The notes beneath the pieces are model-generated. The model saw only the letters and a program-made list of their open reading frames with translations. It had not been told where the DNA came from and ran no database searches. A stretch of DNA of 64,000 bases, from contig CP075495.1 of assembly GCA_021613535.1 (NCBI GenBank), forward strand, positions 14,508,001 to 14,572,000, in the 5' to 3' direction. Positions 33,886-63,578 of the stretch are shown one piece after another; positions within the stretch are counted from its first letter, which is position 1, and each line of letters begins with the position of its first letter. The stretch comes from Adineta vaga (lineage: Eukaryota > Animalia > Rotifera). The translations under genes were made by a program, and so were the position numbers.

Positions 33886-36800
33886 TTAGATTTCATAATT
33901 TCGAAATTTACGAAGATAATCGTTAGTCGGTTCTGTTGATTGCCATTTGGAAGTTTTCGGAATGTTTTGTTTTTCTTCTTCGTTCTGTTTGTTCATCTGT
34001 TCACTTTCAATCATTGGCTCTTTTTTTGTTACCATCCAATGAAATGTCTAGAATGAGAAACAAAAAAAAGAATTATTCAGATCATTTCACACAGATTCTA
34101 CTCAACAATTCGGTGTGATATTTTCTTTTCTCAGCATCAAATGAAAACAATTCTTACTAGAAGATCTGTACTCATTTTTTAGTCTACGATTCGAGAAGAC
34201 GATGTGTCCTTTTTTTCGATTTTTTACATCTAAAAGGGCGTCACATTGTCTACATCCTTCCGGTCGATCGTTCTCAGTAATGCTTCATGCTGAATCAATG
34301 CCGGAGGGATAACTTAGCTCAATCAACAGAATTTTTCTAATTTATTTTAAGTAAAAACATGGTCACTATGCTTTTTTATCGAAGTTTTCGTATAACTTTA
34401 GAGGACGATCAAAATGCGGTAATGATTAGTGTTAAATTGTATATAAACACGAAATGTTTAATGATGTAAAGGTCATTTTTCGTGTGTCTATATTGTTTAA
34501 CAATTGGCTCTTCATAAATGAAGAGAAAAATAGACACTTTTAGCCTGAGGATTTATTTTCATCAGTAAATCAAACCAATTTACTCATTAGAAAAAGAAAA
34601 GCATTTATCTTGTCTCTATTGTACTGAATTGATCGGTCTATTGAGACACATAAATTTCTTATATATTATCAAAATCTATCGATATTGAACAATCAACAAC
34701 TGGGATGCAACATCTGTTATATCTTCAGACGAATTGTCATTAGTTAAAGATTTCTCTTCAATGTTCAAAATCCATTGCCTTTCTTTTTCTTTTCTCTCTC
34801 GTCCTCTCCTCTCTCTCTCTCTCGCTCTTTTCAAGTTCACATATATACACAGAAAAGACTTTTTCTCTTCTTTCCTTCTCGATTTTTTTTTCATTCTTCC
34901 TTCTTCATTTGCGTTCTTCGCGTCCTATTACTCAGATGCATACAAGAGACATCGAGATAGAAACGGGCATATGTACATTAACCAAACGAGAGTAAACAGA
35001 CGATAGAAAGGGCATCGTCGACCGCAAAAAATCGACTTTTTTCGATTGGATAAAAAAAGGAAAACGAAGAAATAACCATTGGTTAGCAATTAATTCCTGT
35101 CAAAGAGAAAGAGAAAGGGCAGAAAGAAAGAAAAATAGAAGTGAACGAGCACGAACACAATCACACATTGCATTCATTCATTCATTTTTCTACTTCACCG
35201 ACACACGCACATTCTTGTTCTTCCCTATAAGATTTAAAACACGCTATGAAACAACAACGAGACAAAATCTCTCGAAGTAAGAAAAAAAAGAATGCCTTTT
35301 TACTGAACATATGATTTTAATTCTTCTAGAAATTAAAACTGATAACGACGAACTCGTTTATATTGAACTAGATTTAAAATGCTGGTAGATATTATCCTTC
35401 TGTTCTTTCGTATTCATACTTTTTTACCTTTTTCAGTTGTCCACAATCAACATTAAACAATAATGCATCCATTCAGGTATTCATCTCACTTCTCTTTCTT
35501 CACTGCATCCTATTCTCTTCTCTTCTCATTTCAGTTTTCTCGACGTTATCTTCAATGTCAGAGTTCAATGCCTGTTGCTATTCTTCGATCATATATACAA
35601 CACATTCTACCACATTCTTCCATGACACAAGTAAACATCACTATACACATATACATTCCATTCACGCTCACTCTTTTCCTTCTTCTTCTTCTTCTCCTAT
35701 TTCAGGTGACATTCTATGATTCTCAACATCGACTTTTACATGATCAACAACTTCTTTCTTCACTTCAACCATCCATCGCCTCTCCCTCCTCCTCCTCCCC
35801 TTCATCATCACCAACATCGTATCAGCATATTCCTGTTCGTTTCTCATTATTCAATACTATCACTTCGCTCACTCATTGTTCTTGTTCATCATCTCCGATG
35901 CAACCTCAACTCCACTCGACGACGACAATGACTACGACGTCTTCTCTTCCAACAATCATCAAACGTGAAACAATCGATCAAACACTCTCCACTTGTGCAT
36001 CACTTCAGCCAACATCGACATCACCTATCATCTATTCTCCTTGTTTATCCTCATCATCTTCACCTCCAACTCAATCACCTTCAGCATCAGCATCAACATC
36101 GATTTCAATTGTGAATCTTCTCACTCCACCATCATCGTGTCATTCGTCGATCGATTCAGCTAATACCATCACTGATCGAAGCATTATCGATGAAATCACA
36201 TCACAGTTTGGTGAGATCTGTCCACCGTTAGGAAAAAAGAATCGAAATCGTGTGTCGAAAAAGACAATGATATCATCGAATACTCCACTTGATTTGAGTT
36301 TGAAGAAACGTTCGTCATCATCGTTTGAGATGTTTTCATCACAACCAAAATGGATTAAAATTTAACGTTCTCTTCTACATGTTTTCTTTTTTTCTTCTAT
36401 TTAACAGTATGTGTGATATATTCTACACTTCCTCTTGTTTGTCTGTACAGAAAAAGAAGGAAAAAAAGATTATACTAACTCATTCCTTTTGCAAGGGCGG
36501 ACAGATGAAAATGAATGAAAAATGAGCTAGAAATGAAAATTATGATTATTGTTGTTTTTTTTTCATTAATGACCAAAGGCAATGACGTATACGCTGTAGG
36601 GATCTTTTGATGTTATGTTTTACTTGCATGTGAAAAAAAGACGTGCAGCTGTGTATATATTTTTTTTCTTACCGGTTGACTTCGTTCAGTAATTGACTGC
36701 CATTTTTTCCATGGAACATTTATATGACTATTTCGCCAATAATCATATGTTTTACGTTGAACATCATTACAAAGAACTTCTTTTGCTTCTTGAAGTTGTT

Positions 36801-37086
36801 TGAACCGTTCCACTACGAAAAGATAAGTTCAATGAATTCAAAACCGTCAATTAAATAGAACATACTAGCTTTGGGATCATCTAAATTCTTATCAGGATGA
36901 AATTGAAGTGCTCGAATGCGATATTCAGTTTGAATTTGATCTTTCTGAAAAAAGTACAATCAATCATAAACAAAAGAATATCTGATACAAATGTAATAAT
37001 CTAGTTACATTTGAAAGTTCATCACAGCCAAGAATGACATAGTAATCATCAGATTCATCGCGTTCGTTGTTTAATAATACATCCAT
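33886..37086 (-). CDS. DNAJC12: J-domain co-chaperone DNAJC12/JDP1, 4 exons, last intron 2.6 kb
   Basis: Exons 37086-37009 (MDVLLN...DYYVILGCDELSN), 36944-36866 (RALQFHPDK), 36812-36673 (YDYWRNS...WKKW) and 34047-33886 (TFHWMV...YLRKFRNYEI*). The HW motif and the RKFRNYEI terminus are characteristic of DNAJC12. Confidence 0.93.
35045..35082 (+). promoter_or_regulatory. Tandem inverted CCAAT boxes (33-bp spacing) upstream of RAWUL copy 1
   Basis: ATTGG at 35045 and 35078. The same arrangement is present in both paralogs. Confidence 0.65.
35246..36365 (+). CDS. RING-less RAWUL-domain protein with C-terminal PLDLS, copy 1 (nested in DNAJC12 intron 3)
   Basis: Five exons: MKQQRDKISRK|IKTDNDELVYIELDLKCC|CPQSTLNNNASIQ|FSRRYLQCQSSMPVAILRSYIQHILPHSSMTQ|VTFYDSQHRLLHDQQLLSSL...HIPVRFSLF...PLDLSLKKR...QPKWIKI*. 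All introns are GT-AG. Resembles the BMI1 RAWUL (DEIISLSIE...KRYLRCPAAMTVMHLRKFL...PLPLKYRV). Confidence 0.8.
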
Positions 37087-40000
37087 ATTTACAATTTGAT
37101 CTAGAATAGGATAAATTGAGTTTTCCTCTCTTTTCGGAAATTGCATAGAATAATTATTAAGACGAAAATTAATCTTTTCTTTCTGATTAAATCGAATTTC
37201 TAGAAACAAACGATAAATATATATTTCATCCTATCTTTTATTAATATTTTAAAATTGAAGCCATAGCACAGTAGGAACAAGAGTATAGAAATGATATTGA
37301 AATAAACGCGTAAATTATGAATTAGTTTTTTTTGCAATCCAGGAAATCGATGTAACTTGTAAATTGCTTTTCAATTCGGATTCTATGAATGAGGTAGATC
37401 CTACTAAGGTATAAAAAACACCAAAAGGGATGATAACTGATTATATGTCTTCTAATCGAACCTGTAGATATTATACTGAAATCTTGTATGAATCACAAAT
37501 TTTTTAGGAATTCTACTTATCATTAGATCTCTCTGTGAGCGTTACATTAGTTCAAAAGACAAACTACTCAATTTTTTTATACTTCATTATGGTTAATCCT
37601 ATGCATAGAGTCCGAACTGAAAAGTGATGTATCAGTTGCATCAGTTCCCTTGTAAGAAGACAAACAACAACATCAAGAAAGAGACAGAAAGAAAAAGAAA
37701 AAAGATCGTGTGAGAAGATTTAACGAAAAAAGAAAGAAAGAAAGAAAGAAACACGATTATTTTTTCTTCTTTCTTTATCACACAAATAAAAATGACTAGA
37801 AAATATCGGTGATTTGATTTTTATACATGAAATAATATTAGTAAAGAGAATAGAAGACTCAATGAGCTCACTGTTAGAAAGAAGAAAAAAAAGAGAATTT
37901 CCTTAACACAAAGGAGATAGAAGAGATTCGAAGACATTTATATATATATATTATAGTAATATACAATAGATTAATGAAAGAAAAAGATTTTGTCCTTTTT
38001 TTTTTCAATTTTGCAATTGATCCGAACGATGAAAAATTAAAAAACGATGTAAAACATTACGATTAGGTTCTTGTCGTCGATTACGATTAATTGATGTTTG
38101 AGGTGAATTTCTATCTGTGGAAATATTACCAGTCATCCCGTTTAATGATGTATTGGAATTTAATGGTGGCAAATCATTTGCATCAAGTACTGTTATTATA
38201 CAATTGCCACTGTTATTATTAGTATTGTTGATTGAATTTTTTATTTCTATTCAAATAAAAATGAATAAGATTAAAATTTTCGAAGCAAAACTTACCCGAC
38301 GATAATGAGACACCATTTTGACGTTGATCACTGATTGAATGAATAACTATACGTTGATTAAATTGTCGCCAACGAATACATAACTGAAAAGAATGGTAAA
38401 TGAAATCTATCATTTCTTCTTGATAAAAACTCGTTTTCATTACCTGAAGATACATTTTACATTGAACATAAAGAAATACCTAGAAAAATTGTAATCAAAA
38501 CAAGTGAAAAGTTCTTTGAAAGATTCTTACTAATCCTCCCGTAAACCCAATAGCTACAACAATTAATTTAGTCCAAAAAGGCCATTCTAAATTCAATATT
38601 TCAATTGAAATAATATATAACTTTGAATTAAACTTACGAAGTTTTCCTTGTTTAACTTCTTCTCTTGTTTTCTCAATTAAAACATAAAATGACCATAAAA
38701 CACATGTAACAGCAATCAAATTAAATGCAACTGAACACATGATTTTTCGTCTTTCAACAACATTCATATCTAACTTTTGCCACTAAAAATTCAATAAAAT
38801 CAAAAAAAAACTTTTTCTTTCTCTTTTTTTCCGCTTAATTCTTACTTGATTGAATGGTTTAATTTCTGAATGCATTATAAATTCAAATTTACATAATTCA
38901 CATGATTTTACTCCTGCACTTTTTATCCAACGTTGTAAACATGATTGATGTAAATATTGCATCGTACCCAAACATAAACATGGCGATATTAATGGTTCAT
39001 CTGGTGTACTTTCACAATGACATATTCGACATATATCAGGATTATCACTTGTTTTCGAACTTGTCGATGATAAAGACATTTGACGTGAGAGTGTTTCATT
39101 GTTTGATGATGACAATAATAATGGACTTGTTATTGGTACAGTTGCTTCTGTTTCTTCATGAATGTTCTTCATTGTTGTATCAATATTATTTTCATTTGTT
39201 TGACTATGTTTAAGAATGATTTCGGAAGCCATTACTGTTCGCTATTATATAAATAAGAAGAAAAAGAAATATTTTGTTTAATTTAGAATATTTTATTTAC
39301 TTGAATAATATATATCACAAAATAACTCTAATGAATCAGTTTAAGAATAAATAAATGACGAGTCAATATGACTCGAATTAAATGATTAGTTATTCGTACA
39401 ATTAATAAAGTACAACAGAAAATAATTGATACTTTTTTGTATAAGGATATTTATTCTCATGTAAATTATTAGTTATTGGTTTTTTATGACGCCATTCATA
39501 TAAACAATAGATCCTCTCGATAAGCATTTTGACAGGCAAATAGTTGTCGATAAGATATCAACGACATCTATCGATATTCGAGTTCTCTTTTCTATATATA
39601 ATCCAAAGTGGAAAAGAAAAAGTGTGTTTGCTTTTCATTCAGATCACGTGACTTTCAATTCTAATTAACATCAAGGTAGAATCGATCTAAAAGAAAGATG
39701 CACATATGTTGTGTTCCTGATCTTTGACGAACAGGTGAAAAAAATGCTTTTGGCGAAAAATATTCATTGATGAATACTAAACATTTGTGCAATCATTCTC
39801 ATTATGGATAGAAGAACTGAAAAGTAAATAAATAGAAATGAGAAATAAGATGCTACCACTAATGGAGATTTATTGCTTCGATTTCCTCCAAATGATCATT
39901 GAATACATATGGAATCTGTTCAGTAGAATATTTTCTACGGTTAACAGTACGCTTGTGAATTGAATGATATTTGATATAGAATTATATTCTTTTCTTTTCT

Positions 40001-41349
40001 TTACACCGTCTGGTCTTCTCACCACCTTCCCCCTTCACTTTGTCTATCTGGGCAATCGATCGCTTCGTGAAAGCAACAAACACAGCATGATTCTTCACTT
40101 TTTTTTCAACACACAATTCAAATTCTATCTGTATAAGCATATCTAATTTGTTCATATATGTCTTAAATAAACGTAATCAATCGTTCATTTTGCTTTGCAC
40201 TTTCATGCTGTGTAACTGAAAATGTATTCACGATGATATTACATAGATACAGAGAGACAACAAAGTTGGACTACAAATTTTATATATCTATCACATAAAC
40301 AAGAAAAAAAAAAGCTTAAGTTTTAATCCATTTTGGTTGTGATGAAAACATCTCAAACGATGATGACGAACGTTTCTTCAAACTCAAATCAAGTGGAGTA
40401 TTCGATGATATCATTGTCTTTTTCGACACACGATTTCGATTCTTTTTTCCTAACGGTGGACAGATCTCACCAAACTGTGATGTGATTTCATCGATAATGC
40501 TTCGATCAGTGATGGTATTAGCTGAATCGATCGACGAATGACACGATGATGGTGGAGTGAGAAGATTCACAATTGAAATCGATGTTGATGCTGATGCTGA
40601 TGCTGATGCTGAAGGTGATTGAGTTGGAGGTGAAGATGATGAGGATAAACAAGGAGAATAGATGATAGGTGATGTCGATGTTGGCTGAAGTGATGCACAA
40701 GTAGAGAGTGTTTGATCGATTGTTTCACGTTTGATGATTGTTGGAAGAGAAGACGTCGTAGTCATTGTCGTCGTCGAGTGGAGTTGAGGTTGCATCGGAG
40801 ATGATGAACAAGAACAATGAGTGAGCGAAGTGATAGTATTGAATAATGAGAAACGAACAGGAATATGCTGATACGATGTTGGTGATGATGAAGGGGAGGA
40901 GGAGGAGGAGGAGGAGGGAGAGGCGATGGATGGTTGAAGTGAAGAAAGAAGTTGTTGATCATGTAAAAGTCGATGTTGAGAATCATAGAATGTCACCTGA
41001 AATAGGAGGAGAAGAAGAAGAAGAAGAAGGAAAAGAGTGAGCGTGAATGGAATGTATATGTGTATAGTGATGTTTACTTGTGTCATGGAAGAATGTGGTA
41101 GAATGTGTTGTATATATGATCGAAGAATAGCAACAGGCATTGAACTCTGACATTGAAGATAACGTCGAGAAAACTGAAATGAGAAGAGAAGAGAATAGGA
41201 TGCAGTGAAGAAAGAGAAGTGAGATGAATACCTGAATGGATGCATTATTGTTTAATGTTGATTGTGGACAACTGAAAAAGGTAAAAAAGTATGAATACGA
41301 AAGAACAGAAGGATAATATCTACCAGCATTTTAAATCTAGTTCAATATA
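35359..41349. repeat. Inverted repeat with ~1-kb arms (35359-36360 and 40321-41349) and a ~4-kb spacer
   Basis: Arms are essentially identical, including three introns. Visible differences are 27 nt of microsatellite length variation and one synonymous TCC/TCT change. Confidence 0.92.
38005..39232 (-). CDS. MARCH1/8-like membrane RING-CH E3 ubiquitin ligase
   Basis: RINGv CRICHCE...[24 protein letters not shown]...CELCK. Two TM helices with [11 protein letters not shown] and [28 protein letters not shown]...[11 protein letters not shown]. Confidence 0.93.
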
Positions 41350-41521
41350 GATGCTTTCATCATTCGCTTTTTTCATTTCTTTCGTTGTCATGGAATCTTT
41401 CATTCTTGACTCTAAACGAAAAAAGTAAATACAAATGTTCATTTAATGAAAAGATGAATTCCTTACTTTGACTATTTTTCGAACATTTGGACTTTGATTT
41501 AACCATACAAGATGGTGACAT
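40316..41521 (-). CDS. RING-less RAWUL-domain protein with C-terminal PLDLS, copy 2
   Basis: Has its own N-terminus MSPSCMVKSKSKCSKNSQK|SRMKDSMTTKEMKKANDESIYIELDLKC (ATG 41521 or 41506), then matches copy 1 through ...PLDLSLKKR...QPKWIKT*. Same intron positions. Confidence 0.8.
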
Positions 41522-41672
41522 GTTCAAGCTTACAACGTTTTTTTTTGTGCTAATGTCGAAGTCTATCGGCGAAGAAAAAGAACTGAATGCAATGTGCGTT
41601 CGTGCTCGTTCACTTCTATTTTTCTTTCTTTCTGCCCTTTCTCTTTTCCTCTCTTGAGATAGTTTAAAACAA

Positions 41673-41709
41673 CCAATCGATACTGATTTTCTCTCAGTTT
41701 TTATCCAAT
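41673..41709 (-). promoter_or_regulatory. Tandem CCAAT boxes (32-bp spacing) upstream of RAWUL copy 2
   Basis: CCAAT on the + strand at 41673 and 41705, i.e. ATTGG in gene orientation. Confidence 0.65.
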
Positions 41710-43031
41710 AAAAAAACGCAATTATTTGGTCAATGTTCGTTCCTGTGCCCCTGTTTACTCTCGGTTGGACTAATATGTATGTACATGCCCGCTTTCGACC
41801 CGTCTCGCACATATATTTTCTCGTTGAGAGATAGGGCGTATACACATGCAGTGAAAGAAAAGAATGGGAGAAAGAAAAAGAAGAAGAAAAAAGCGCTCTG
41901 TGTTTGCATATTTGATTACAATAAAAGAAGAAGAGAACGGGAAAAAAGCGGGCGCAAGAAGAACGAATAATCTTTGTATTTTCTCTTTATTCAGCCTCTG
42001 GCTAGGAAGAAGAGAAAAAAGCAGATGAACAAATTAAGCACGTAGCAGCTGTTACTTCTCATTCGTTGTTTCTTGTACATCAACTTTCTCTCTCTAAGAA
42101 ACAAAGAAAATATTCATTCGTTAAAAAGTCTCTCTTGACAGACGAAGTAATATGAGATGTACAGAAGACAAATCGCTTTGTAGTATTAATTGATTTGATA
42201 ATGAAGATGAAGTTAATTAAACAATGGCGGGTTAAATTAGTCCAATCAATGAAATTTTCTCGTGAATATGAAATGACCTTTGATGATAGATTTTCTAACT
42301 TACAATATAGAATCTGTTCGTCATTATTCTACGATTAGAATGAAAAAAACTGAACGAACTATTTTTTTTCTATCAATACTCTCAAATGACCACTTTTATT
42401 TTCGTCTAATCTTCTTCTTCTCCTTCTTCTCTTATATGTGCTATTCGACTGTCAAGTGCCATCAAAAGCGAATAGGACGAGTGAATAGTAATCATTTTAG
42501 TTCGTTGGGTGTGAATTTATCTCAGCACCTCCTTCTGCACTCTTAATTCATCATGTCAATTCTGATTATAACCAATAGAGAATGAATTAAAACAAGATGA
42601 TATTCTCATTATCATTCTTTTTTTTTCGTGATCAAAAGATGCGGTCGATTAATTGAGCTTAAATAACAAAAAAAAGCTTTCCATACCTTTTCCTGACCGA
42701 TAATCTTTTGGTCAGCTGACGGCTATTTTCTTGTTATTTTCATGCTGAGAATAGACATTCTCATCAATTAGAGATTATTAAATTCGTGAGAGATTCCTTT
42801 TTAAGCACGTTTCGAGGATTAATACTGACAAAATTCTAATTGGATTCTTTTCTTTCTCATATTTATGCCTCAAGGGAAATGTTCAATCGATTGATATGAT
42901 TGTCTCTTTACATTTCTCGTCATTCGATTGGATGATTGCATCCAATGAACCAATCATTGATGATGATGATCACTTCTAGTGAAGTAAACAGAATGATAAG
43001 CTTTCTTCATCATTTCCTTCTGATATATTGA

Positions 43032-44555
43032 TTACAAAATGAAAAAAATAAGACATAAAATAAAAATCATTTGAAAAATGTTCATTCGATATTTGATTGA
43101 ATTCGATATCATTTGTTGATCATGTAACATTTCTAAATAGACTCCATTCGTCCATCCGAAACCATCTTGAGTTTCATATTCACCACCACCAGCTGGTTTA
43201 TTTATATTGACAACATCGTATTTTTCCATCATTTTACCTGTATCACGAAAAACACGTTCATTCAAATTCATCCAACGATTTCGAATTGTTCTTGCTACTG
43301 TTTCATAACCGGGAACTTTCAATAGAGCTCGATAAGTAACAAATTGTAACGGTGCCCAACCATTTGGACTATCCCATTGTTGAGTACTTTGATTTGATAC
43401 TGTTGTTACCACACCACCATCACGTAAAAACATACTTTCAACTTTCTGAGCAACATATTCTCCTTGTTCTTTCGTTGAAATATCAAGCCACAATGGAAAT
43501 AATGCAGCTAATGTTAATCGATTTGTTGATTTCTTTAGAACATGATTGTAATCAGTAAAGAATTGTAAATCCGATGACCACATATATTTTTGTATAGCTT
43601 GTCGACGACGATCAGCTTCTGCTTGTTTACCTAGTGTTAATTCTAAATGATATAATAAACAATTTAAATCAACAGGAAGAATATTTGCAGTTCGTATTGT
43701 TGAAAGATCTTTTTCATCATCCATCCAACGTGAACTAAAATCCCAACCAGATTCTGCAGCTGCTCGTATATGTGCATAAATATCTGTATCATTAGACTTA
43801 TGTGCTGTTTCACGATCTTCAACATATGCTTCAGGACGTGGACCATCATTTAGATCATCATAGTAACGATTTAAAATTGAACCATCATCAAGTGTGATAT
43901 TTCTTTTTTTCATCCAAAATTGATATTCAGCTTCTAATTCTTTCTTATATTTATTTGTTTGATTTGCTAATTCTGTCATTAAGGAGAAGAATGGTGGTTG
44001 TGATCGTCCTTCATAATAATTACGATTTCCATTTGGAATTAGGCCAATCTTATTGAGTAGAAAAGCAAAATTATCTAACATATTATTGATTAAATCCATT
44101 TGATTCGAACGAACTAAACCTAACATTGTGAAATATGTATCCCAATAATAGAATTCTCGAAAACGTCCACCAGGTACAATAAATGGATGTGGAACATCAA
44201 TAAATGATGAAAATTTTTCTTCTTTAGTTGTTCGTGTTAATAATGGCCATAAACGATGGCAATGTTCTTCTATTGTCCATTTTTCGTGAACAACTGTTGT
44301 AGTATTTGGTAATATGAAATGTTCATAGACAAAGGATGTTAAATTAAATGCTGGTTTTGAATATTCTTGACGATATAGATCGAGAATTGCATTGGGATTG
44401 AGTTGTCGAGGAATAACATCACAAAATGTTTTTGAATCGGAAAATATACGTTGAATTTGTACTGCTTGAAATAATTCGTCATATAATTGTTCGGGTGATT
44501 GACATTTGATTAAGGAAATGATGAAAAAAAGAACGATGTAATGAAGTGTCTGCAT
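43032..44555 (-). CDS. Intronless GH37 alpha,alpha-trehalase of bacterial TreA/TreF type, with signal peptide and hydrophobic C-terminal tail
   Basis: Motifs PGGRFREFYYWDTY, IPNGNRNYYEGRSQPPFF, PRPEAYVED, AAESGWDFSSRW, QQWDSPNGWAPLQ, GGGEYETQDGFGWTNGV. The N-terminal LFQAVQIQRIFSDSKTFCD resembles bacterial TreA. Ends IFQMIFILCLIFFIL*. Confidence 0.93.
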   Translation of the reverse strand: MQTLHYIVLFFIISLIKCQSPEQLYDELFQAVQIQRIFSDSKTFCDVIPRQLNPNAILDLYRQEYSKPAFNLTSFVYEHFILPNTTTVVHEKWTIEEHCHRLWPLLTRTTKEEKFSSFIDVPHPFIVPGGRFREFYYWDTYFTMLGLVRSNQMDLINNMLDNFAFLLNKIGLIPNGNRNYYEGRSQPPFFSLMTELANQTNKYKKELEAEYQFWMKKRNITLDDGSILNRYYDDLNDGPRPEAYVEDRETAHKSNDTDIYAHIRAAAESGWDFSSRWMDDEKDLSTIRTANILPVDLNCLLYHLELTLGKQAEADRRRQAIQKYMWSSDLQFFTDYNHVLKKSTNRLTLAALFPLWLDISTKEQGEYVAQKVESMFLRDGGVVTTVSNQSTQQWDSPNGWAPLQFVTYRALLKVPGYETVARTIRNRWMNLNERVFRDTGKMMEKYDVVNINKPAGGGEYETQDGFGWTNGVYLEMLHDQQMISNSIKYRMNIFQMIFILCLIFFIL

Positions 44556-45243
44556 GTTGTTTTGTTTTGTTTTGCAATTGAAGATTGTAGGTAGATGAGA
44601 TACAAAGATTTATATGATATTGTTTTATAAAGATCAAGCACGTTTTTCTTTGCACAAGAATCATGTTTTTTTTGTCTCTTATCAGAGGTAAATAGACAAT
44701 TCTTTTCAGTACAAAGCGTTATACCAAAAACACCTCTAGATTATTGATCGAAAGAAAAGAAGAGTCTTTTGTAATTCAACGACGTAATTTCAAAAAGATA
44801 GTCTAGAGACATAAAATACGAATGATAACGATCTTTACAATTTTGTTCAAATAAAGAATTTTCTACAGAGGTGTCATTTTAACTTCACCTTTACTTTAAA
44901 AAAGTAGTTAAAGTTTAATGTCATTTTAATTTGCTTGAAATCTTGACGTTAAAAAGTGTGAGTATGCATTATTAAATCAGATCTCATATCTACATCATCA
45001 GATATCAAAAATTATCTTATATTTAATCAGAATTCAGAATAATAATCAATTTAATTTTTAGAGACTTTTGTCTTAGACGAATCAGTCGTTTAGTTTAAAT
45101 CATTTGATATCGTACACCAAGCAAGTGACGACATCTTTGAATAATACCAAAACGAGGAGATATATGATCATCACCAGGAAGGATTAGAAAAAGCTATTCG
45201 TTCTTTTCTTATACTACTAAACTGAAAATCGAAATTTGAAATC

Positions 45244-45898: not shown

Positions 45899-46263
45899 AT
45901 TTCTTTCTTGTTTATATATATATATATAAAATATCTCATAATTATTTGATTGTCCTACATAGAATTGATTCTTTTTTTCTTCAAGATTATCCATCATTTT
46001 GTATTATTATTTAATGATAATCCTGAAATATACAAAATGAATATCTCAACTTAACTGATTCGAAATTGTACATAAAAAATTTATCATATCAGATCATTCT
46101 CTGATGAAACGGACGACGATTAAAATAGATTTTCATTTATTTCGTATAATTTATTTTAATATTATGCGAGAATCAAAAGAAAACATATTATTATTTGTCT
46201 CGTATAGAACAAGTAAAAAACAGAACGAAGAACGAGTAGTGTAGGAGGAAAAAAAAGAATGGA

Positions 46264-46353
46264 TGCCCCCGGTGAGGCTCGAACTCACGACATCCGCATT
46301 GCTCCGATACTGTGTATAAGTACGGCGCTCTGGTCCAACTGAGCTACGGGGGC
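46264..46353 (-). tRNA. tRNA-Ile(UAU) with a 15-nt intron
   Basis: GCCCCCG TAGCTCAGTTGG...CCGTA CT TAT A [cacagtatcggagca] A TGCGG...GTGAGTTCGAGCCTCAC CGGGGGC A. Acceptor, anticodon and T stems pair. Intron at 46300-46314. An oligo-T terminator follows. Confidence 0.96.
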
Positions 46354-52490: not shown

Positions 52491-54177
52491 TTTTCGATGT
52501 AACTAAAAGGCAATAAGAAGAAAAAAGTGTTAGTAAATAAATAGAAGAAGAAAAAGTATGCTTAATCAGCGTAAATAGGAAATAGAATATGGCGGATGAT
52601 AATTTTGCCATCTGAATAAACTTGATAAAGAGTTTTTCAAGTGACAACAAATCGTTAGAAGAAGAAGAAGAGAAGAAAAAAAGAGGCCAAAGCAAAGTAC
52701 AATTGGTGTTTCTTTCACAGTTGGAAAAAAGAAGAAGACTGGGGAAAGAAATTCAAAGATTGCTAAAGACAAGAAAGAGAAAAAAACACGAGAGATGCGA
52801 GGATAAAAAAAAACGAGTGGCATTAGAATTTCCTGCTAAAGATTTTTTGAATATTACATATCATTAGAATGAAGTTTTCTCTTCCTTGGATTTGTCTCTT
52901 CAGGGGACAGTCGACGTCATACCAATGAATCAAATAATTATATAAGAAAAAAAATCTTTCTAGAAAAACATTATTTAATCTTCGATGTTTTCAACTACTG
53001 ATATCTTCAAAGAATAAATATTTGAATCTTGAAAATTTCATTTTCGAAGTATAATTCATCTGTTTTTCTTTTGATAAATATGAACATAGATTTGAGTAAT
53101 CAAATTAGAAATGATGTTGTTTTTCTTTTATATACGATTTCATATTCATTGAACTAAGTCATACTAACCGTAAGAAGATTGTTGAAATATTACAATGACT
53201 TTTTTTGAAAAATCATGAAAAGATTGATATTTCTTACATGATCTGTGACAACAAAAACTAATTGAAAATCATCGTCTTAGTGACAGTGTCGAAGAAAGAG
53301 AAGGAAATCTGTCGTCTTTTATCTCACCCATCAGGATAATTAATATAACCATTCTTTTTTTTATATGATTAATTCAGAAAAAGATTTCTATTTCTCTATT
53401 CATATATATATATATATATATATATTCACCTTAGATGTTTTAATATCCATTATAAATTTGAAAAAACTCTTGATGCGTAATAATAGTAGATAATGATTGT
53501 AACGGTGAAAAAGAGCAAAATCCGACGTTTTTTAATTGCAATAATACATCTATTTAGATGAAATGATAATATTCGTGCATCTTGATTAAGCCAAAACATG
53601 GATCAATTAAGAATATATATTCGTCGGAAAACAACAAGATAGAAAGAGAGCAAAAATATTGTCTCTTTTCTCTAAGTTTGCGTGCCTTTGTGTAATCTAT
53701 TTTGCACTTCATTCTTCTTCTTCTTCTTCTTCTTCTTTTCTTCTTCTTTATGTTGCCACAACAACGGAAATCTGTTGTCGTTTACTTTCATAACATAGTC
53801 CTCTGACTAACGTCGGCACGGTACGACGAAGTCTTCATTCAAGCAATCGTTGATTGAACACCGGCATGCTATTTTCTTCTATTCGAGCTCATCACGCATT
53901 ACTAGAACCATCAATGAATTTTTCTATTGTTTCTTTTCTTTTATTTGTCTTTTACTACTCATGCAATGTAGACAAAAGTCAAGAAAAACAAAAACAACAA
54001 GATAGAACGGAACTGGTGGTACTTCATCAAATGAAATATTAACCTTGTCATACAACGAAATTTTGCTTCATAATGAAAAAAAGAAGAAGGAAAACAGAAC
54101 TTATTGGATATTACTACAAATTAATAAATGACAAAAGAAAATCTATAAAAACTGAAGAAGAAAATATATATATATAT

Positions 54178-55199
54178 TCATTCACGTTCGATTTGTATTT
54201 GAACACTTTTAATCACATGAATTCGATTAGATTGTAAAACTTGTTTTAAACTTTGTCGATCACGATATTGTATTCGATAAGCATTAGTTTGTCCATATCG
54301 ATAACAATTTAATATTTGACCAAATTGTGAAAAATATTCTAATAAATTATAATCAGTTAAACGTGATGCAACATTTCGAACAAGAAGATAATTATCACAT
54401 TCATTGAAATGATCATCGGATTCAATGAAGATATTTAAAACACGTCCATTTAAACAAAATGCACGTTTTAATAATAATTTTATACTATCATTTATATCAA
54501 ATACACCTAATATATACATTTGTCCATAACAATTTTGATGAATAGTAAAAGTTTGTAAAGTCGGAAAATATGTTGAAAGTTTATCTTGATCTTGTTGATG
54601 ATAATTTCCAATATGAACAAGTCGATCTAATGATAATGCAGGAAGAATTTTTCTCGAATGATTTCGTGGATAATATTCGATAGGATAACCATTGATTTGA
54701 TGATTGGACGATCTTATTGCACGATTTGCATCATTTAATTGAGCAAATTCAACAAATGCATAACCACGAGATCTATAAAGAATACAATTAAGTATAAGAC
54801 CGAAATGTTTCGATGTATATTCATAGAGATCATCTTCAGTTATTGATGTGAATTGACCAATTTGTACAAAAACAAAATTGGGTCCATCACGAGTATCATT
54901 GAGTAAAGATGCACTAGACGAAAATAAGAGATTGAAATAGATTGAGAAGATTCTTTTGTCAATTACTTTATTCGACAATTTTCAATGAAATGTGGACGAG
55001 TATTGAGAAAATTAGTTGCACTAATCATGGATGAGAATAAAACATGTACATATGGATGATAACTTTGAGTTTTTCGACGAAAACAACGAAGATTTTTATC
55101 ATAAATTCGACAATATCGTTCAACTATTTTAGTTGATAATGTTCTAACATTTGTAATAGCAATAATTGCTTGTTTTTCTTGATCTTGTCGATTATTCAT
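54178..55199 (-). CDS. Multi-RRM RNA-binding protein, 2 exons
   Basis: RNP1 RGYAFVEF, and RNP2-like FVFVQIGQF and YLLVRNVA...LLEYFSQFGQI. An intron at ~54966-54915 joins the two ORFs in frame. Confidence 0.8.
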
Positions 55200-55777
55200 T
55201 TGAATAAAACGGAAAAAAAATATAATTTAGAAAAGAAGAAGAAGAAATAGTTTTGAACGAAACGACGACGACGATAGATTATAAGAAAAAGTATAAAATA
55301 ATCATTGGTTAGAAGATAAATATTCTTTTACTAGTTCTGCTCATTCCTGCCATCTGACGATAGATCTTGGGAATTTTTAACTAGATAAATTATTGGGTTA
55401 AAGTTCAATGATGTTATTATGTCAATGTCATGACGAAGAATATTTCATTTGCTTCTTTTCGAAATAGATAATATCAATCATGAGCAAAAGATTAAATGTA
55501 GTTTTCAAATAATTAAAGTCAATATAAAACGTACTTCGTCTATCTGTTCTTTGAGATAATTCAATTCGATAGACTTATGTTGAGAGTAAAGTTATTGTCG
55601 TTTTGTGTATTTCAAACCAAATTCAATAGTAGATCATTGAGCTTATTGACATTCCTTAAGTTTTATCTCTACGTCACAAAAAAAAACATATACAAGTTCA
55701 GTCATTTTATAATAGGAATTTATTCGGATTCGTATATAGATATCGAATGATGATAGATATTTATTAGAATAAATCCT

Positions 55778-56919
55778 TTACGATTGATATGATGATAATG
55801 AATTTCGTTCTTGTGATACAGTAAATATATAAATATTTCGAAATTTATAAATCAATTTGATTAAATAATTTACTAAATCATTTTTCGAACCGATTTGTGA
55901 TGGTTTTGAAAATGTTGAATCTAAATTATAATAAATTCCTTGAAGATTCTTAATTGTAAACCAATGATTACTATTGATATTAATTAATAAACCAAAATAT
56001 GAATCCCATGGAAGATGTTGTAAGGATTCACCATTATAAAAATTGACTTGTCGTACATAATATCCACAACGTTTAATTGCTTCGATTAAAACACGTAAAT
56101 CATAATCACCGATATAGAAACGACCATAATCATTATTATAAGAATTTTTATCAAATTCATGAACAATTGCATCAAGATGTTTATGTGTAAATAAATGAGG
56201 AATTTGAAATAGATTATTCAATGAATGAATACCACAACGAAGAAATTCTTGTCGTTCATGATAGATTACCTGAAAAATATTTGTTTAATTAACGTATCTG
56301 ATTGTATAGCACAGAATATTTACCTGCTTCTTGTCCTTCTCTGTTGATTGCTGTTGTGGCGGCGCCGACGGCGGTGATGGTTGTTGTCGATATTCTCCCT
56401 GACGTTTTCGTGCTGATTCATCTCCATCACCATATTGTTGTAAAAGAAGAGCATAATAACGATCATCATCTTCACAACGTTTAGATGCTTTATTGTCTTT
56501 GGCATAATGACTACCGAAATCATTATCTACAGATGACACATTCATATATTGATTTAAACAAAAAGAAGCTTCTATATGTTACTATTTTCTGTATTTGATG
56601 CGGAACGAGAACTACTTTTTGCATTCGAAAATTTTCCTTTAAATTCTTTACCATTGCAATAATCTTCGACGATATCCTATTCAAAAAACAAAAGGTAAAT
56701 AGAATGACTAATCAAATCTTCATATTTTACTTGTAATTTCCAATTATATTGTGTAAGAAAATAAATACAATCTTCGATGTTCAATTCAGTAAGTTCCTAA
56801 AAGAAATATTCTGACGAAATTTCATAATTTTCTTGAAAAAAAAACAATTTCACATGAAAAGTGTGAAGAATTTTGTCTTGTGATTGTGTCTGTGACATAG
56901 TTGACAATGAAGTCGACAT
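55778..56919 (-). CDS. Josephin-family deubiquitinase with an N-terminal UBA-like domain, 5 exons
   Basis: Josephin domain IYHERQEFLRCGIHSLNNLFQ...GDYD...NHWFTIKNLQGIYYNLDS with the Cys-His-Asp triad intact. The N-terminal exons DKILHTFH|ELTELNIEDCIYFLTQYNWKLQ|DIVEDY are UBA-like. Confidence 0.85.
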
Positions 56920-57269
56920 TGTGTTTCTTTTCAATGTATGTTCCTCAGTAATGAAGGTAAGTAACTAAAAGAAAGGAAAAAAAGAAAGAAAAATCAAGGT
57001 AAATAACGTGCATTTTTTTCTGTTGATAAATATTCGTCATGAGAATGACTTGTTGAATATTTCTTACATTTTCAATAACAGAGAAAAAGATGAAAATAAT
57101 TACGATGCTTGAGATAAGTTGGACAATATTTTATTATTCTTAAAGAATTGAAAAACAAAAACGATGAGTGACAGATAAATAGATATTGAATGAAAATATG
57201 CAATCTAATTAATTCAAATTGTGCAAGAGTGATGTTTCCAACATGAAGAAAAAATTATCAATATATATT

Positions 57270-60131
57270 TCAATTTGCTGATCGTTGCGTAATGTTCAAT
57301 GCTTGTCGACTACCGAAAAGATATTCTGCTGGAAATGTCGATGCAGCCGAAGAAAGACTGAGTGACAGAGAAGGTGACGGTACCACTCGAGGAGATCGTT
57401 TAAGAGGCATGGCGTAATGTGGTCTTCGTTTTTCACTTCTTGCACTGGAAAGAATATCAAGTTTTATATCATCAGCTGTTCGACTACTGGCAATACTGGA
57501 CGGATGGATTGTATCAGAAATAGTGTCCGGTGAACGAGGACTTTTATTAAAAGATTTATCAATTATATAATAATCAACTAGACGTTTTGGTAAACCATTT
57601 GGTATTTCACGCGATGGTGAACGATTTTTTTGACGTCGCTTTAATGGACACCAAAGACAACTAGAAAAGAATATTCTTTTTTCTTGCCTGTCCACGAATG
57701 AAGAATCAAAACTTACGATTTTGGACAACAGAATAAACAACTACAGCATAGAGCAAGAGCAAGTAATAGTAAAGCAAGTATACCAAGAATGATACCAAGC
57801 AAAGTCCATGTAGAATCTAATTCGAAATCAAAATTGTTGTTTTCTATTTAAATTATAAATGGTTGCCACAAGATATACCTGACGAGTCTGGAGTTGGACT
57901 TGCGGTAGTGGTGGTAGTTGTTGATGTAGTGCTGGTACTTGTCGATGTGGTGCTAGTACTGGTTGAAGTGCTACTAGTACTAGTTGTTGAAGTACTACTA
58001 GTACTTGTTGATGTACTGCTGGTACTCGTTGATGTAGTACTAGTACTTGTTGATGTGGTGCTGGTACTCGTTGAAGTAGTGCTAGTACTGGATGTTGACG
58101 TACTGCTAGTACTTGTTGAAGTGCTGCTAGTACTGGATGTCGACGTACTACTAGTACTTGATGTCGACGTACTGGTAGTACTTGTTGAAGTACTGCTAGT
58201 GGATGTTGACGTACTGCTGGTACTTGTTGAAGTGCTACTGCTAGTAGACGTTGATGTACTGCTAGTACTTGTTGAAGTGCTGCTAGTACTGGATGTCGAC
58301 GTACTGCTAGTACTTGTTGAAGTGCTACTGCTGCTGGATGTTGATGTGGTGCTGGTACTTGTTGTTCTAGAAATATAATTCAAATGAACGTTCATAGTCT
58401 AAATGAAGATAGTTCGTAATAGATGCAATCTATATGAATACAGCTGGAAAACTTTCTATTTATTTTAAAAGACAAACTATTTTAATGTAAAGAACTTACG
58501 TTGTCGATGTCGTTTCACCAGGACATAATGGAGTAGTGTCTTCCGAAACTGTAAATGTCATACAATATTGATTTGATTGAACCTTGCCACTAAAATAGTA
58601 GATGATTTCTTCTCTGAACAACACATTCAATATTAAGTATACCTGTCTACTGCAACAGCACATAGAACTTGTGATCCTACTGCATCTGCTGTTGGTGTCC
58701 ATGTCAAACTCACTGACCATAAACTTGTTGAGTTTTTTACAATTGGAGTTTTAATAACAATAGGAAAAGATATAGTAGCAATATCTACAATTGTCGTTGT
58801 GGAAGGACAAAAGTTTTCCGCGATCAATTGAATAGCATATGGTTGCCCAACTCGAATAGCAACACATTTACCAGAGGCGGATGTGGGACTTGTAAGACTC
58901 GGACGAACGGCACAGGAAGAAGTTGCCTGTACATTTATTAAGAATTGAAGTGGAACTGTACTAAGACGAGTCGTAGAACTAGAGTCGATAAAATCTTCAA
59001 TCTAAACAATAATATTATTTATTGATCTATACATCAAAATTGTACTATCAACGGTAACAATAAACGAAACTAAGTATCATTCATGCAAAAGAATGATTAA
59101 TACGATTCTTTCGAATTTACTCACAGTATTTTAAACAATATATAAGCTTTGCCAGTCAAATTTGATTTCCTTCAATGCTTTTTAACACTTCAATTCTACT
59201 TCAAAACATTCCCCTTGTCGTCATACAAATTCTATCGATAAAAAAACAAATGACGTTCATTTCTTCACATGAACTACTCAAGTATATTGAGATGAATTAA
59301 TTGTATTTTACTGACTTTTCTAAGAAAATCTGCTTAATAGTAATCACTCGTTTAATGTCACACAATTACCTGTACTGCTACTGCATACCAATCACCGGCA
59401 GTTAAGCCAGTAATAAGTAATGTACAATTTGAGAATAATACTGTTCCACTTGGTAATGTTGCTGGTGGACATGCATTTCCACATTCAGTTGTTCCATTAG
59501 CAAATCGACATCGTACATCATCATTATCACTATCGATCGTTGGTATCGATATGACTTGTTGAACTCCAACAGGTATATAGATTGGTGAAATGATTGCAGC
59601 AGTAGGTGGATCATTAAAAGTTCCATCGGCTCTCATTTGTAGATTTATCAAACATAAAATACTCCATTTCGTATTAGTACTCGTTGAACCAGATGGTCGT
59701 GATAATTGTCGCCAAGATAAACTTTCATAAGCAACAAGAAAATAGGATCCATTGATGAGATCTATTCGATCCGAACGTTGACCAACAGTTATACCAAGAC
59801 TTGCTGAATAATCTGTACAATAGGAAACTACTGATTGTGGTATATATCCTCCTGATTGATTACAATATTGAACACAAATAACTGTAGAACTGTTTTCAGG
59901 ATAACTTCCACCAAAAGTCAGTTTCGGTGATTGATTAGCGATCATTGCATCATTACAACTAATTTTTGTATAATCATAAATATAAGTTTGAGTAAGAAGA
60001 ATTGTAATCGTTGATCCTGATGTATTTACAACTTTATACGTAATCGTTCCACCTTGAAAATGTGTTGCATGAATATAAACATGGATAGGAAAGAAGATGA
60101 AAAAACACCAGAATATAGAATAATTCTGCAT
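57270..60131 (-). CDS. Type I membrane protein: HFxGG-type N-terminal domain, Thr/Ser mucin stalk, TM helix, Cys-rich juxtamembrane segment
   Basis: Signal peptide, then ATHFQGGTITYK, NDPPTA, DSDNDDVRCRFA...ECG, WYAVAVQ|IEDF, STVPLQFLI, LTWTPT...QVLCAVAVD. A ~150-residue T/S tract, then TM WTLLGIILGILALLLLALALCCSCLFC. Six exons. Confidence 0.85.
57905..58367 (-). repeat. Coding Thr/Ser low-complexity repeat (ACTAGCAGTACGTCAACATCC-like units)
   Basis: Directly visible. It produces the spurious V/L/D antisense ORF 57863-58378. Confidence 0.9.
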
Positions 60132-62268
60132 GTTTTCAATCAATGATTTGACAGATTGATTGAATCGATATTGTTTTGTACTTATATGTTAAAATTTAAA
60201 ACGCTCAAGTACTTTCCTGTTGTTAATATTCACATCATTCAGAATTTTTATTTTAATTGAACGGAAAAAAACATTTTTCTTTCTCAATCATTAATTTTCA
60301 AGCTACTTGCACAATGAAGATCATTTATTTGAAATTAGAGCAAAATAAGAAAGTTTTTTCTCGTAATACTCAGTCCGGATCCATAACTAATTATACATAC
60401 TCTTCTCGGTAGAGAATCTAGGATCCTATTTCACACCTATGGTGATCAACATCTGCTTTTTTCTTTTGTTCACACTGATACAATCTTCTCTAGTGATTTT
60501 ATATTAATAGTATACATTAAAATAAAGAATATATTGATATCACTTTCGAAAGACTCGAATTGATTTATTCGATCATCACACTTCAATAAAAAAAAGACTA
60601 AGCTGATAAAACATCAATTTTTTTCGTTTACACAATTGGACAATTAGAGTGTTTGTCGACAATAATAACTACAGATGGAATAAATTAGCACTCAAACAAG
60701 AATAAACACCTTCATTGCAGAAACATCTAAAACGAATGTCAGCTGCTGTTATTAAATCGCACATATAAGTAGCACCGGAAGTGTACCATTGCGCTTATCG
60801 CTTTCTGTTTATTCATGTCACCCATTGATGATTGGTTCATTTAACAGCATCATCCAATGAGAAGAGGAGAAAAGAAAGAACGAGACGATTGATGCTTGTC
60901 GTCAGCAGGAGAAATTCCCTTGGGGCATAAAAAAAGTTCGAAAAATAAAGGAAGAAGATTTCAATTAGACTCTTCAGACTAATCTTCGAAAAGAAAAATG
61001 CACATGTCACGAATATCGAATTCTTTTTTAAAAGAGGATAATTAAAATTGTTTAAGTCAGTTTTTCTCTTCAAGCTCAATTAGATACGTATGATCGGCAA
61101 TATAAGTAATCTATTTGATCTTTTTCTTTTTTTTTCTTTCTCCGTAACAAAAGCAAACTCATTTGTTCATTCTATCACATTTTATTCATGTCGACAAGAG
61201 CGATAACTGAAGAACACCTTCTAGTGTGAAGTTATTCTCTAAGGAATATCCTGTCAACATTAGTTTTCATTGGTTCATGTAAATGAGATGTCTAGGCCAC
61301 ATGGTGATTGGCACGCATACATGCCGAGCGGCGCAGATACAATCTTCATGCGATGTTGATTGCACTATATTCGCTTGAATAGATTCTCTTAACAATCAAA
61401 TGATGTGAAAAGCATTGCCACAATTTTAGTAATTCTAGAAATCGATCTACCTTTTGATTGATATCTTACTCTTGACTTATTAAATGTAAAAGGAAAGTCA
61501 GACCTAATCGTCTTAAACTATCCTTTCATTGACTACTAATAGTTTGTCGGATATTCTCATTGTTAATTCCTCTCAAGAAGTTGAAATATGAACAATAATG
61601 AAATTAATTTTATCTTCATTTTATATGTATCGGACCACTAACAGAGAATGTTAAGTTCTCTTTCCCGACTCCCTATTGATTCGTTTGAATATACGGATGA
61701 ACAGCATGAAAGAGGTTTCCTCTTTCTCTCACTATGTAATTAACATTTACATGAGATGTACATTAATTTTTTTCTTTTATTCAAATCGTTTTTTCCTACG
61801 TTTATGTATGTGTGTGGTTTTTTTTCACACTCTTTCAATAAATTGATCGATGAGAAAAGATAAAAGAGAGAGAATAATCATCATTGAATGAATAGAAGGA
61901 AATCTAACGACGAATCAGAATTGATCATCTGTTGCCCACTGCACATCATTAGTCATTTCCTTGACCAAAGGCTAGAAGAAACAATATGAAATTTATTTGT
62001 TGTCATCACTCAATCTTTCTCTGTTCTGTCTCAATGCAGACCTAATCAAATATACGAACGTAGAATTTTTTTTCTCTTTCTTTCTTTCTTCTTCTTTTCT
62101 TTTCCTTCTCGTCCCATTACTCAGTTGAATGTGTATGAGACGGGTCGAGATCGAGCGGGCACAAACACATACACACACACGCATGCATGCGTGCATTAGT
62201 CGAAAGAAGAGTAAACAGGACAGGACAGACAGACAGACCATCATCGTTGAAATAATTGCAGTTGTTCT

Positions 62269-62305
62269 ATTGGATAAAACAAGTCGACAATTGAGTTTCC
62301 ATTGG
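62269..62305 (+). promoter_or_regulatory. Tandem inverted CCAAT boxes (32-bp spacing) upstream of RAWUL copy 3
   Basis: ATTGG at 62269 and 62301. ATTGGATAAAA is shared with both paralogs. Confidence 0.65.
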
Positions 62306-62523
62306 TCATCGATGTAATCTTTCATATTCGTATCTATCGCTCACTTGAGAAGAAAAAGAAAGGGCAAAAGGAAAGAAAGAAAGAAAGAAAGAAAGAAAGA
62401 GAAGCAAACGCGCGCGCACATACACACACAAACACATTGCATTCATTCATTCATTTCTTCTTCTTCTTCTTCACTGACAAACATACACACACACACACAC
62501 GTTTTTCTCTGACAGGACGCGTC

Positions 62524-63578
62524 ATGAAGAATCGACGAGTAAAACTTCATAAGAGTATAAAAAAATGAAAAACCTTTTATCTTTTTTCCAATTATCCATC
62601 TGTTTTCTATTTAATAGAGTCAACCAAACCTGAAGAATATGTATATATTGAATTAGATACAAAATGCAGGTATATAAACTTTTTTTTTATTCTTTATCTC
62701 TTGAAAGAAAAGAACTGTTTTTTTAGTTGTTCACAATCATCGCTCGATGATCATGCATCTATTCAAGTATGTTCTTTCACTCTTTTTTTTGTTGAATTTA
62801 TTGAATATTCGTTTCGTAGTTTTCACGTCGCTATCTTCAATGTCAAGCTTCAATGCCTATTCACATTCTTCGTTCATATATTCAACAAGTTTTACCTCAT
62901 TCACCAATGACAAAAGTAAAATTCAATGTAATCTATTACACTTTAATGCTTCTTTTCTTCTTCTAGGTATCAATTTATGATTTGAATGATCAATTATTGA
63001 ATGACTCCATCTGTCTAAAAGATCTTTCTTCTTCTTCTTCTTCATTAACACATATTCCTCTTCGTTTTACAATGATGAATACAGTCACATCATTCGGTCA
63101 TTGTTTATGTTCATCTCCTTGTTCTCCGATAAAAAATTCTTCGTCGTCACCATCGTTTTCACCAACTATCATTCAACGTGAAACAATAAACCGAACATTA
63201 TCAACATGTCCATTAGTTCCAACTCCTCCACATTCTCCATCATCTTCAACGTCACTTTCACCTATTCTATCGAAAAATTCATTACCAATTGTTAATCTTC
63301 TAACTCCACCATCACCGCCCCATTATTCATCATTTTTAATTGATAGTATCGTCGAATCGAACTGTAATGATCCATCGATTATTGATAAAATAACATCGGA
63401 ATTCGGTGAAATTTGTCCATCAGAACCTTCGATAAAACGAAAACGACAACGAATTTATAAAAAACTTCTACCAAAAACATCATCACCGTCAGATATTCCT
63501 CTTGATTTAACTGTCAAAAAACGTCCAATATCATTCGATTTGTTTCCAATGCAATCGAAATGGTTAAAAATGATTTAG
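62524..63578 (+). CDS. RING-less RAWUL-domain protein with C-terminal PLDLT, divergent copy 3
   Basis: Same five-exon structure: MKNRRVKLHKK|STKPEEYVYIELDTKCS|CSQSSLDDHASIQ|FSRRYLQCQASMPIHILRSYIQQVLPHSPMTK|VSIYDLNDQLLND...HIPLRFTMM...PLDLTVKKR...QSKWLKMI*. Confidence 0.8.

Follow-up and report, generated by a model that had tools for sequence, protein, structure and literature searches.

What might a protein do that carries the partner-docking domain of a Polycomb PCGF protein and has no RING? This question is raised by a 64 kb stretch of the genome of the bdelloid rotifer Adineta vaga (piece C2, 14508001-14572000; hereafter the window, in which positions are counted unless a genome piece is named). 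The window holds three related genes: copy 1 at 35246..36365 (+), copy 2 at 40316..41521 (-) and copy 3 at 62524..63578 (+). RAWUL domains serve to dock accessory subunits. A prediction made from the DNA letters had read the three products as RAWUL proteins without a RING that end in a binding motif for the co-repressor CtBP. We hold with high confidence that the genes belong to a family of RING-less RAWUL proteins. Our favoured reading of their function, to which we give a probability of about 0.5, is that the family descends from a BMI1/Psc-type PCGF gene and acts as a non-catalytic adaptor between a RAWUL partner and CtBP.

The N-terminal domain

The first ~110 residues of the products are, judged by sequence, a RAWUL domain of the PCGF type, as the original prediction had proposed; BLASTP and hhalign place it nearest to the BMI1-like PCGF of A. 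vaga, and the best fold matches are BMI1 and PCGF1 RAWULs. The domain follows a short basic leader and lies at 35347..35885 in copy 1 (+; aa 17-134, across exons 2-5, with BLASTP and hhalign matches to the A. vaga PCGF), at 40808..41361 in copy 2 (-; aa 36-156, identical to copy 1 here except for a short Ser insertion) and at 62632..63110 in copy 3 (+; aa 16-121). The reference PCGF is a single-exon gene with RING and RAWUL (L002, G000:C6:8931882-8932667), BMI1-like by its PDB matches, whose own RAWUL scores 34.7 bits with the Pfam model in the genome scan and 32.4 bits as a protein.

For similarity searches with copies 1 and 3 we used the identical public proteins P0001 and P0041. In BLASTP against the L002 RAWUL these reach E-values of 8e-8 and 3e-8, respectively, aligned from the first strand on, at an identity of only ~30%. 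The profile of the family's N-terminal region matches L002 in hhalign at 93% and 95.5% (E 1.5e-8 for the latter) and gives no match to RING1 or to the second PCGF of A. vaga; on this negative result we reject an origin from either a RING1-type RAWUL or the second PCGF. Over the whole A. vaga genome, the family profile hits nothing beyond its own four genes and the L002 RAWUL (E 4e-4); run over PDB sequences, it finds just two chains, both of them the BMI1 RAWUL.

Structure prediction points in the same direction. The AlphaFold2 (AF2) model of the copy 3 domain (mb2833b183a7a; 13 sequences) has a mean predicted local distance difference test score (pLDDT) of 70.5 and a predicted template modelling score (pTM) of 0.63, and it adopts a ubiquitin-like (beta-grasp) fold in the order strand-strand-helix-strand-strand; the helix and strands are also the best-conserved part of the family. 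In the VIA comparison, the top five matches are the BMI1 ubiquitin-like domain 5fr6 (Z 10.7; 80 residues at a root-mean-square deviation of 1.9), followed by four chains of the PCGF1 RAWUL (Z 10.1-10.3), and generic ubiquitin-like domains start at Z 9.6 and lower. Foldseek with the same model places RAWULs at ranks 1, 2 and 4-7, with those of RING1B and BMI1 on top, and the neighbours in the ESM Atlas, by features as well as by shape, are RAWUL/PCGF clusters, the shape neighbours being PCGF5, PCGF2 and PCGF1. Since the structural margin over other ubiquitin-like folds is small, membership in the RAWUL group rests mainly on the sequence link: the modelled fold by itself would say 'ubiquitin-like', and it is sequence similarity that makes the domain a PCGF-type RAWUL. 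A confident fold is predicted for the N-terminal domain only; the full-length AF2 model, built on a 9-sequence alignment, is unusable (pLDDT 39).

Absence of a RING

No RING was found in any copy or upstream of the genes, whether by Pfam scans, by a C3HC4 pattern scan or in the architecture of the relatives. Pfam RING families give no match in 13 members at permissive E-values, and a scan of the 64 kb window for the C3HC4 pattern of PCGF-type RINGs is negative in every frame. When 1.84 billion representative sequences were searched with the family profile, 36 proteins came back, one of them a repeat artefact and 35 true relatives; the latter match only within the family's own architecture, with no RING in those read. 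Because the N-terminal C3HC4 RING is missing, we do not file the family as PCGF.

Could the RING have been lost in the gene models rather than in the genes? The models themselves hold up. The stretches were read and spliced by script and yield three paralogs on the same five-exon plan at the positions first proposed, with introns of 52-81 nt that all run from GT to AG. Copy 1 is composed of exons 35246-35276, 35330-35384, 35437-35476, 35535-35630 and 35706-36365 (+; 293 aa), copy 2 of exons 41521-41467, 41411-41324, 41271-41232, 41173-41078 and 40996-40316 (-; 319 aa; its basic leader, MSPSCM..., is longer), and copy 3, a diverged member of subfamily B (see below), of exons 62524-62554, 62618-62669, 62727-62766, 62820-62915 and 62967-63578 (+; 276 aa). 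Once spliced, copies 1 and 3 encode exactly the proteins of the NCBI entries I4U23_010280 (P0001) and I4U23_010290 (P0041), so the public annotation agrees with the models. Our own spliced models of the three copies served for translation, dN/dS (the ratio of nonsynonymous to synonymous substitution rates) and coordinate mapping, that of copy 2 for the tree as well.

If the true transcripts included an upstream RING exon, these would be ordinary PCGF genes. The RNA contigs described below cannot show the true start, which leaves some room for this explanation. Against it stand the negative C3HC4 scan of all frames of the window, the conserved promoter blocks that adjoin each ATG, the two leader types kept from Adineta to Rotaria, and the orthologs annotated in five other species, none of which has a RING. 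The nearest RING, moreover, belongs to a separate minus-strand gene downstream of both copies 1 and 2. We regard this explanation as largely refuted already and extremely improbable.

That sole RING in the neighbourhood is a MARCH-type RINGv (C4HC3), encoded between copies 1 and 2 at 37878-39453 (-). The gene is expressed, with five or six introns in RNA contigs, and contains an open frame at 38786-39232 (-). As the missing RING exon this frame can be ruled out: it lies downstream of both genes and on the strand opposite to copy 1, has spliced RNA contigs of its own and encodes a different type of RING.

The C-terminal tail and CtBP

The RAWUL is followed by a Ser/Pro-rich tail of ~160 residues, which is probably disordered given its very low pLDDT in the full-length model. 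Within it, several islands are invariant: IVNLLTPP, a predicted short helix IIDxITSxFGEICP, a basic stretch, the motif P(L/V)DL(S/T)xK(K/R) and the terminal KW(I/L)K. The conserved blocks first listed for the three copies, YIELD, RRYLQCQxSMPxxILRSYIQ and HIPxRF in the N-terminal domain and IVNLLTPP, IIDxITSxFGEICP, PLDL(S/T)xKKR and KW(I/L)K in the tail, are kept across the family. As a side observation, the island (S/P)IVNLLTPP (36108-36131 in copy 1, 63288-63311 in copy 3) loosely resembles the engrailed-homology-1 motif, without its Phe.

PxDLS, often with K/R after it, is the classical CtBP-binding motif. In the rotifer family, within a tail that is otherwise poorly conserved, P(L/V)DL(S/T)xK is kept in 13 of the 14 full-length members checked and followed by basic residues, and the P-L-D-L and K-K-R columns of PLDL(S/T)xKKR are invariant in all nine aligned members; Didymodactylos has PVDLS, and the paralog on piece C5 has PLDLS. 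The candidate CtBP-binding motif reads PLDLS-LKKR in copy 1 (36285..36311, +; aa 268-276) and in copy 2 (40370..40396, -; aa 294-302), and PLDLT-VKKR in copy 3 (63498..63524, +; aa 251-259). Ahead of it in copy 1 lies the basic sequence KKNRNRVSKK (36234-36263, +), which is a candidate nuclear localisation signal, and the protein is probably nuclear.

CtBP, the presumed receiver of the motif, is encoded at two A. vaga loci (L023 and L024). Exon 1 of A. vaga CtBP matches CtBP1/CtBP3 at E 3e-92 and is near-identical over chain residues 25-80 of rat CtBP 1hku/1hl3, crystallised with a PIDLSKK peptide; the N-terminal region of CtBP is the site of the peptide cleft. We judge it somewhat more probable than a coin toss that the tail motif recruits CtBP.

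A simpler view would dispense with CtBP altogether. The protein could be a pure decoy that titrates the RAWUL ligand off the canonical PCGF and so lowers the targeting or activity of Polycomb repressive complex 1 (PRC1), its C-terminal motif serving something other than CtBP. An intact RAWUL without a RING is what such a decoy would need, and competition of paralogs for one RAWUL surface is known among PCGF3 ligands (bioRxiv 10.64898/2026.10.20.760506). However, P(L/V)DL(S/T)xK and the other tail islands are strictly kept throughout Bdelloidea, which argues for a role of the tail, and CtBP is present with its N-terminal region conserved. We consider the decoy improbable.

Candidate partners of the RAWUL

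If the family is to act as an adaptor, what would its RAWUL hold? Exon-wise Pfam and profile scans of the genome were used to draw up an inventory of PRC1 in A. vaga. Besides the BMI1-like PCGF, it comprises one RING1 gene with RING and RAWUL (L001, G000:C1:8740167-8740964), a second, multi-exon PCGF (L003, G000:C6:7403919-7406978), one CBX cbox (L025) and two AUTS2-like loci (L026, L027). That the RAWUL partner of the family belongs to PRC1 is a tentative proposal, which we rate below even odds.

The main competitor keeps the adaptor and drops Polycomb: the RAWUL would have been re-used for a non-PRC1 partner, for example a sequence-specific transcription factor, to which the tail brings CtBP, with no effect on PRC1. 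Of the markers for known RAWUL ligands, most gave no match in the genome scans. The domain shares only ~30% identity with the PCGF RAWUL, which leaves room for an altered surface, and it bears a family-specific insertion with invariant Cys pairs that PCGF does not have. On the other side, the strands and the helix are what the family conserves best, and all characterised PCGF-type RAWULs, to our knowledge, dock PRC1 accessory proteins. We think this reading unlikely, if well worth keeping in view.

The Cys pairs deserve a closer description. Two of them are invariant in 13 of 13 aligned members and missing from the A. vaga PCGF (L002). The first, K-C-x-C, sits in an inserted, family-specific loop directly after strand 1 (35377-35440 in copy 1, 62662-62730 in copy 3, both +, by coordinate mapping). 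The second, (H/N)-C-x-C, follows a few residues past the last strand (35874-35885, as HCxC, in copy 1; 63099-63110 in copy 3), in a low-confidence part of the AF2 model. The first and last strands of ubiquitin-like folds are parallel neighbours, and for this reason the two pairs could meet and hold zinc: they may form a zinc site.

The idea of an adaptor that works through a RAWUL has a precedent, which comes from the ligand side: FBRSL1 couples RAWUL docking in PRC1.3 to CoREST/CtBP (bioRxiv 10.64898/2026.10.20.760506).

Family history and selection

The family is specific to one lineage, as had been supposed: all hits that carry an organism name are bdelloid, and come from Adineta vaga, A. 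ricciae, A. steineri, several species of Rotaria and Didymodactylos carnosus. The original prediction spoke of a three-gene family. Three genes there are in the window; the genome holds four, the fourth and more diverged member being P0059 (I4U23_023699) on piece C5, and the bdelloids together have three subfamilies. In the tree, subfamily A comprises the type of copies 1 and 2 and subfamily C the C5 type, both in Adineta and Rotaria, and subfamily B comprises the type of copy 3 in Adineta, with an ortholog in A. steineri (P0042). The Didymodactylos member sits on a long branch. As members occur in Adineta, Rotaria and Didymodactylos, the family predates the split of the major bdelloid lineages.

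Copies 1 and 2 have a more recent history in common. They are inverted relative to each other and near-identical from mid exon 2 through the stop (35359-36365, +; 41349-40316, -), with differing first exons, leaders and flanks. The subfamily A copies cluster by species in A. vaga and likewise in A. steineri (P0009/P0021), whereas the two leader types, MKQQR... and MSPxCM..., are each common to Adineta and Rotaria, the copy 2 type occurring in the Rotaria proteins P0027 and P0030. Species clustering of the bodies set against shared leader types indicates that the bodies were homogenised repeatedly by gene conversion and the 5' ends kept distinct.

Are these genes mere leftovers of duplication, decaying or neutral and without function? 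The first exon of copy 1 finds no support among RNA contigs, and copy 1 could stay intact solely through gene conversion from copy 2. Yet all open reading frames are intact, each subfamily has orthologs in other genera, and mRNA of copy 2 is present in all four RNA runs, which come from two studies. Copy 3 compared with copy 1 gives a dN/dS of 0.32 at a dS of ~1.2, which puts copy 3 under purifying selection. For the family the notion of decay is largely refuted, and we rate it very improbable; the family is old and under purifying selection.

Expression, promoters and neighbourhood

Contigs of four RNA runs from two studies were aligned to window positions 33500-39499. They skip introns with GT..AG or CT..AC ends and are therefore RNA-like. 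In all four runs, introns 2, 3 and 4 of the family gene are spliced out precisely at the modelled borders. The contigs contain features found only in copy 2, namely its 3-nt and 12-nt insertions, its exon-2 letters and its 3' untranslated region, which identifies the mRNA seen as that of copy 2. Their 5' ends extend 107-161 nt beyond the upstream limit of the stretch over which copies 1 and 2 resemble each other, a length that is explained since exon 2 and exon 1 of copy 2 together with a leader of ~40 nt suffice for it. By arithmetic on the lengths of the loose ends, the copy 2 contigs reach ~41565, just downstream of the CACATTGCATTCA block. Held against RNA, then, the gene models stand for introns 2-4 and for the expression of copy 2, and the first exon of copy 1 is left unsupported.

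Upstream of the genes, a three-way alignment reveals blocks shared by all three copies: GAGAGTAAACAG, ATTGGATAAAA, CCATTGG, AGAAAGGGCAGAAAGAAAGAAA and CACATTGCATTCA, all within ~250 nt of each ATG. The respective promoter regions are 34985..35245 (+) for copy 1, 41522..41790 (-) for copy 2 and 62200..62523 (+) for copy 3. Two of the five blocks contain ATTGG, the reverse CCAAT box, and the blocks are kept even in copy 3, although silent sites are saturated there (dS ~1.2). They are candidate shared cis-regulatory elements, and transcription may start near CACATTGCATTCA.

Copy 1 with its promoter lies antisense within a 2.6 kb intron (34048-36672, minus strand) of a DnaJ-domain gene; an RNA contig joint from 34047 to 36673 with CT..AC ends appears in four runs, and the exon with the DnaJ domain match is at 36616-36813 (-). 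Elsewhere in the window, an intron-free open frame of 507 aa at 43035-44555 (-) contains a full-length trehalase domain (Pfam E 2.5e-123), and an open frame at 54181-54978 (-) contains an RRM domain (Pfam E 4.7e-15).

Discussion

The favoured reading can be put as a sequence of steps. A BMI1/Psc-type PCGF gene would have kept its RAWUL, lost its RING and gained a long disordered Ser/Pro-rich tail. Without the RING, the product would not pair with RING1 and would form no H2A ubiquitin ligase. Its RAWUL could still dock a ligand, either a PRC1 accessory subunit or, by oligomerisation of the BMI1 type, the RAWUL of a canonical PCGF, and the C-terminal motif would recruit the CtBP co-repressor. 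Such a nuclear adaptor would couple the RAWUL-binding partner to CtBP-dependent repression and, as a side effect, would compete with the canonical PCGF for its RAWUL partner.

Several observations weigh against this reading. The Pfam RAWUL model PF16207 does not reach its cut-off of 33.5 bits in the family: the best match, that of P0041, scores 13 bits (E 0.14), and seven other members give none. The weak P0041 match does fall where it should, with residues 45-94 in register with model positions 1-49, and of the checks proposed for the domain it is Pfam taken alone that stays below threshold, whereas hhalign and Foldseek point to RAWUL. In the fold comparison, RAWULs lead generic ubiquitin-like folds by about 1 Z unit or less. 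PUFD, YAF2_RYBP, PHC2_SAM_assoc and zf-FCS have no match in the genome, and with the last two, both weak proxies, Polyhomeotic, the partner named in the original prediction, leaves no trace in the genome scan; the models are short or weak and were scanned exon by exon, so that absence of the RAWUL ligands is not shown. The Rotaria paralog P0056 has PLDLR instead of PLDLS. When CtBP exon 1 and the last 40 aa of P0001 were modelled as a complex, the score was 0.01, a value that is evidence neither way, peptides and disordered chains being outside the tested range of the predictor. Finally, the exon 1 specific to copy 1 is at zero contig depth in 4 of 4 runs, which is no proof of silence because contigs drop rare variants.

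Taking all these features together, one may picture a natural RING-less antagonist or re-router of canonical PRC1. A zinc-stiffened RAWUL would capture the ligand of the BMI1-like PCGF and pass it on to CtBP, the balance between catalytic and non-catalytic PCGF paralogs would tune Polycomb output, and two differently promoted copies kept identical by gene conversion would supply two expression programmes for one protein body. As a whole, this picture is doubtful, and we offer it as speculation.

What would follow if the proteins bind a PRC1 accessory subunit as well as CtBP? The choice of accessory proteins in a PRC1 complex lies with RAWUL domains, and the family would be a natural case of Polycomb regulation by a non-catalytic paralog, with a logic comparable to that of the Id proteins among helix-loop-helix factors. 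It would also provide a ready-made tool for finding out what RAWUL docking does alone. The family occurs in bdelloid rotifers only, animals that are difficult to manipulate, and what goes beyond domain identity, conservation and expression is inference.

Comparison with known systems

Finally, we would like to place the family among the proteins that it resembles. Known CtBP recruiters with a PxDLS motif include adenovirus E1A, Drosophila Knirps, Snail and Krueppel, vertebrate ZEB and, among Polycomb proteins, CBX4/Pc2. The rotifer proteins share with them P-x-D-L-S/T with Lys/Arg behind it, located in disordered sequence close to the C terminus and beside a basic stretch resembling a nuclear localisation signal. 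The known recruiters, however, are DNA-binding factors, a viral oncoprotein or a chromodomain protein, and we know of none that joins the motif to a RAWUL domain.

A RAWUL-like fold without a RING is also found in the C-terminal ubiquitin-like domain of WDR48/UAF1, the 'WD40-associated' branch; UAF1 chains match our model at Z ~9, and DUF3337 clusters are among its ESM Atlas neighbours. In contrast to the rotifer family, WDR48/UAF1 has a WD40 propeller attached and serves deubiquitinase activation, and it shows no sequence similarity to the family, which is linked by sequence to PCGF only. Closer in logic is FBRSL1/AUTS2 of non-canonical PRC1.3, a non-catalytic adaptor that links RAWUL docking to CoREST/CtBP and whose paralogs compete for one RAWUL surface (bioRxiv 10.64898/2026.10.20.760506). 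FBRSL1 is a RAWUL ligand, whereas the rotifer family would form the opposite side of the interface, and the two have no sequence relationship.

The nearest system by homology is PCGF itself (BMI1/PCGF4, MEL18/PCGF2, Drosophila Psc and the A. vaga gene L002). The RAWUL is homologous, with the same strand-strand-helix-strand-strand order and the core YL.C..(S/A)MP...L..(Y/F), and in PCGFs this domain docks accessory subunits. The differences are as clear: the rotifer family is without the N-terminal C3HC4 RING and hence without RING1 pairing and an E3 core; its RAWUL is N-terminal, where that of PCGF is C-terminal; it has the loop insertion with the Cys pairs and a 160-aa tail with conserved motifs absent from PCGFs; and its genes have four introns, where L002 has none. 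Searches of the literature turned up no earlier account of a PCGF-type RAWUL protein without a RING, nor of one that also bears a co-repressor motif, nor of the rotifer family. What the bdelloids present is a familiar domain newly combined with a familiar motif, found in one lineage only.

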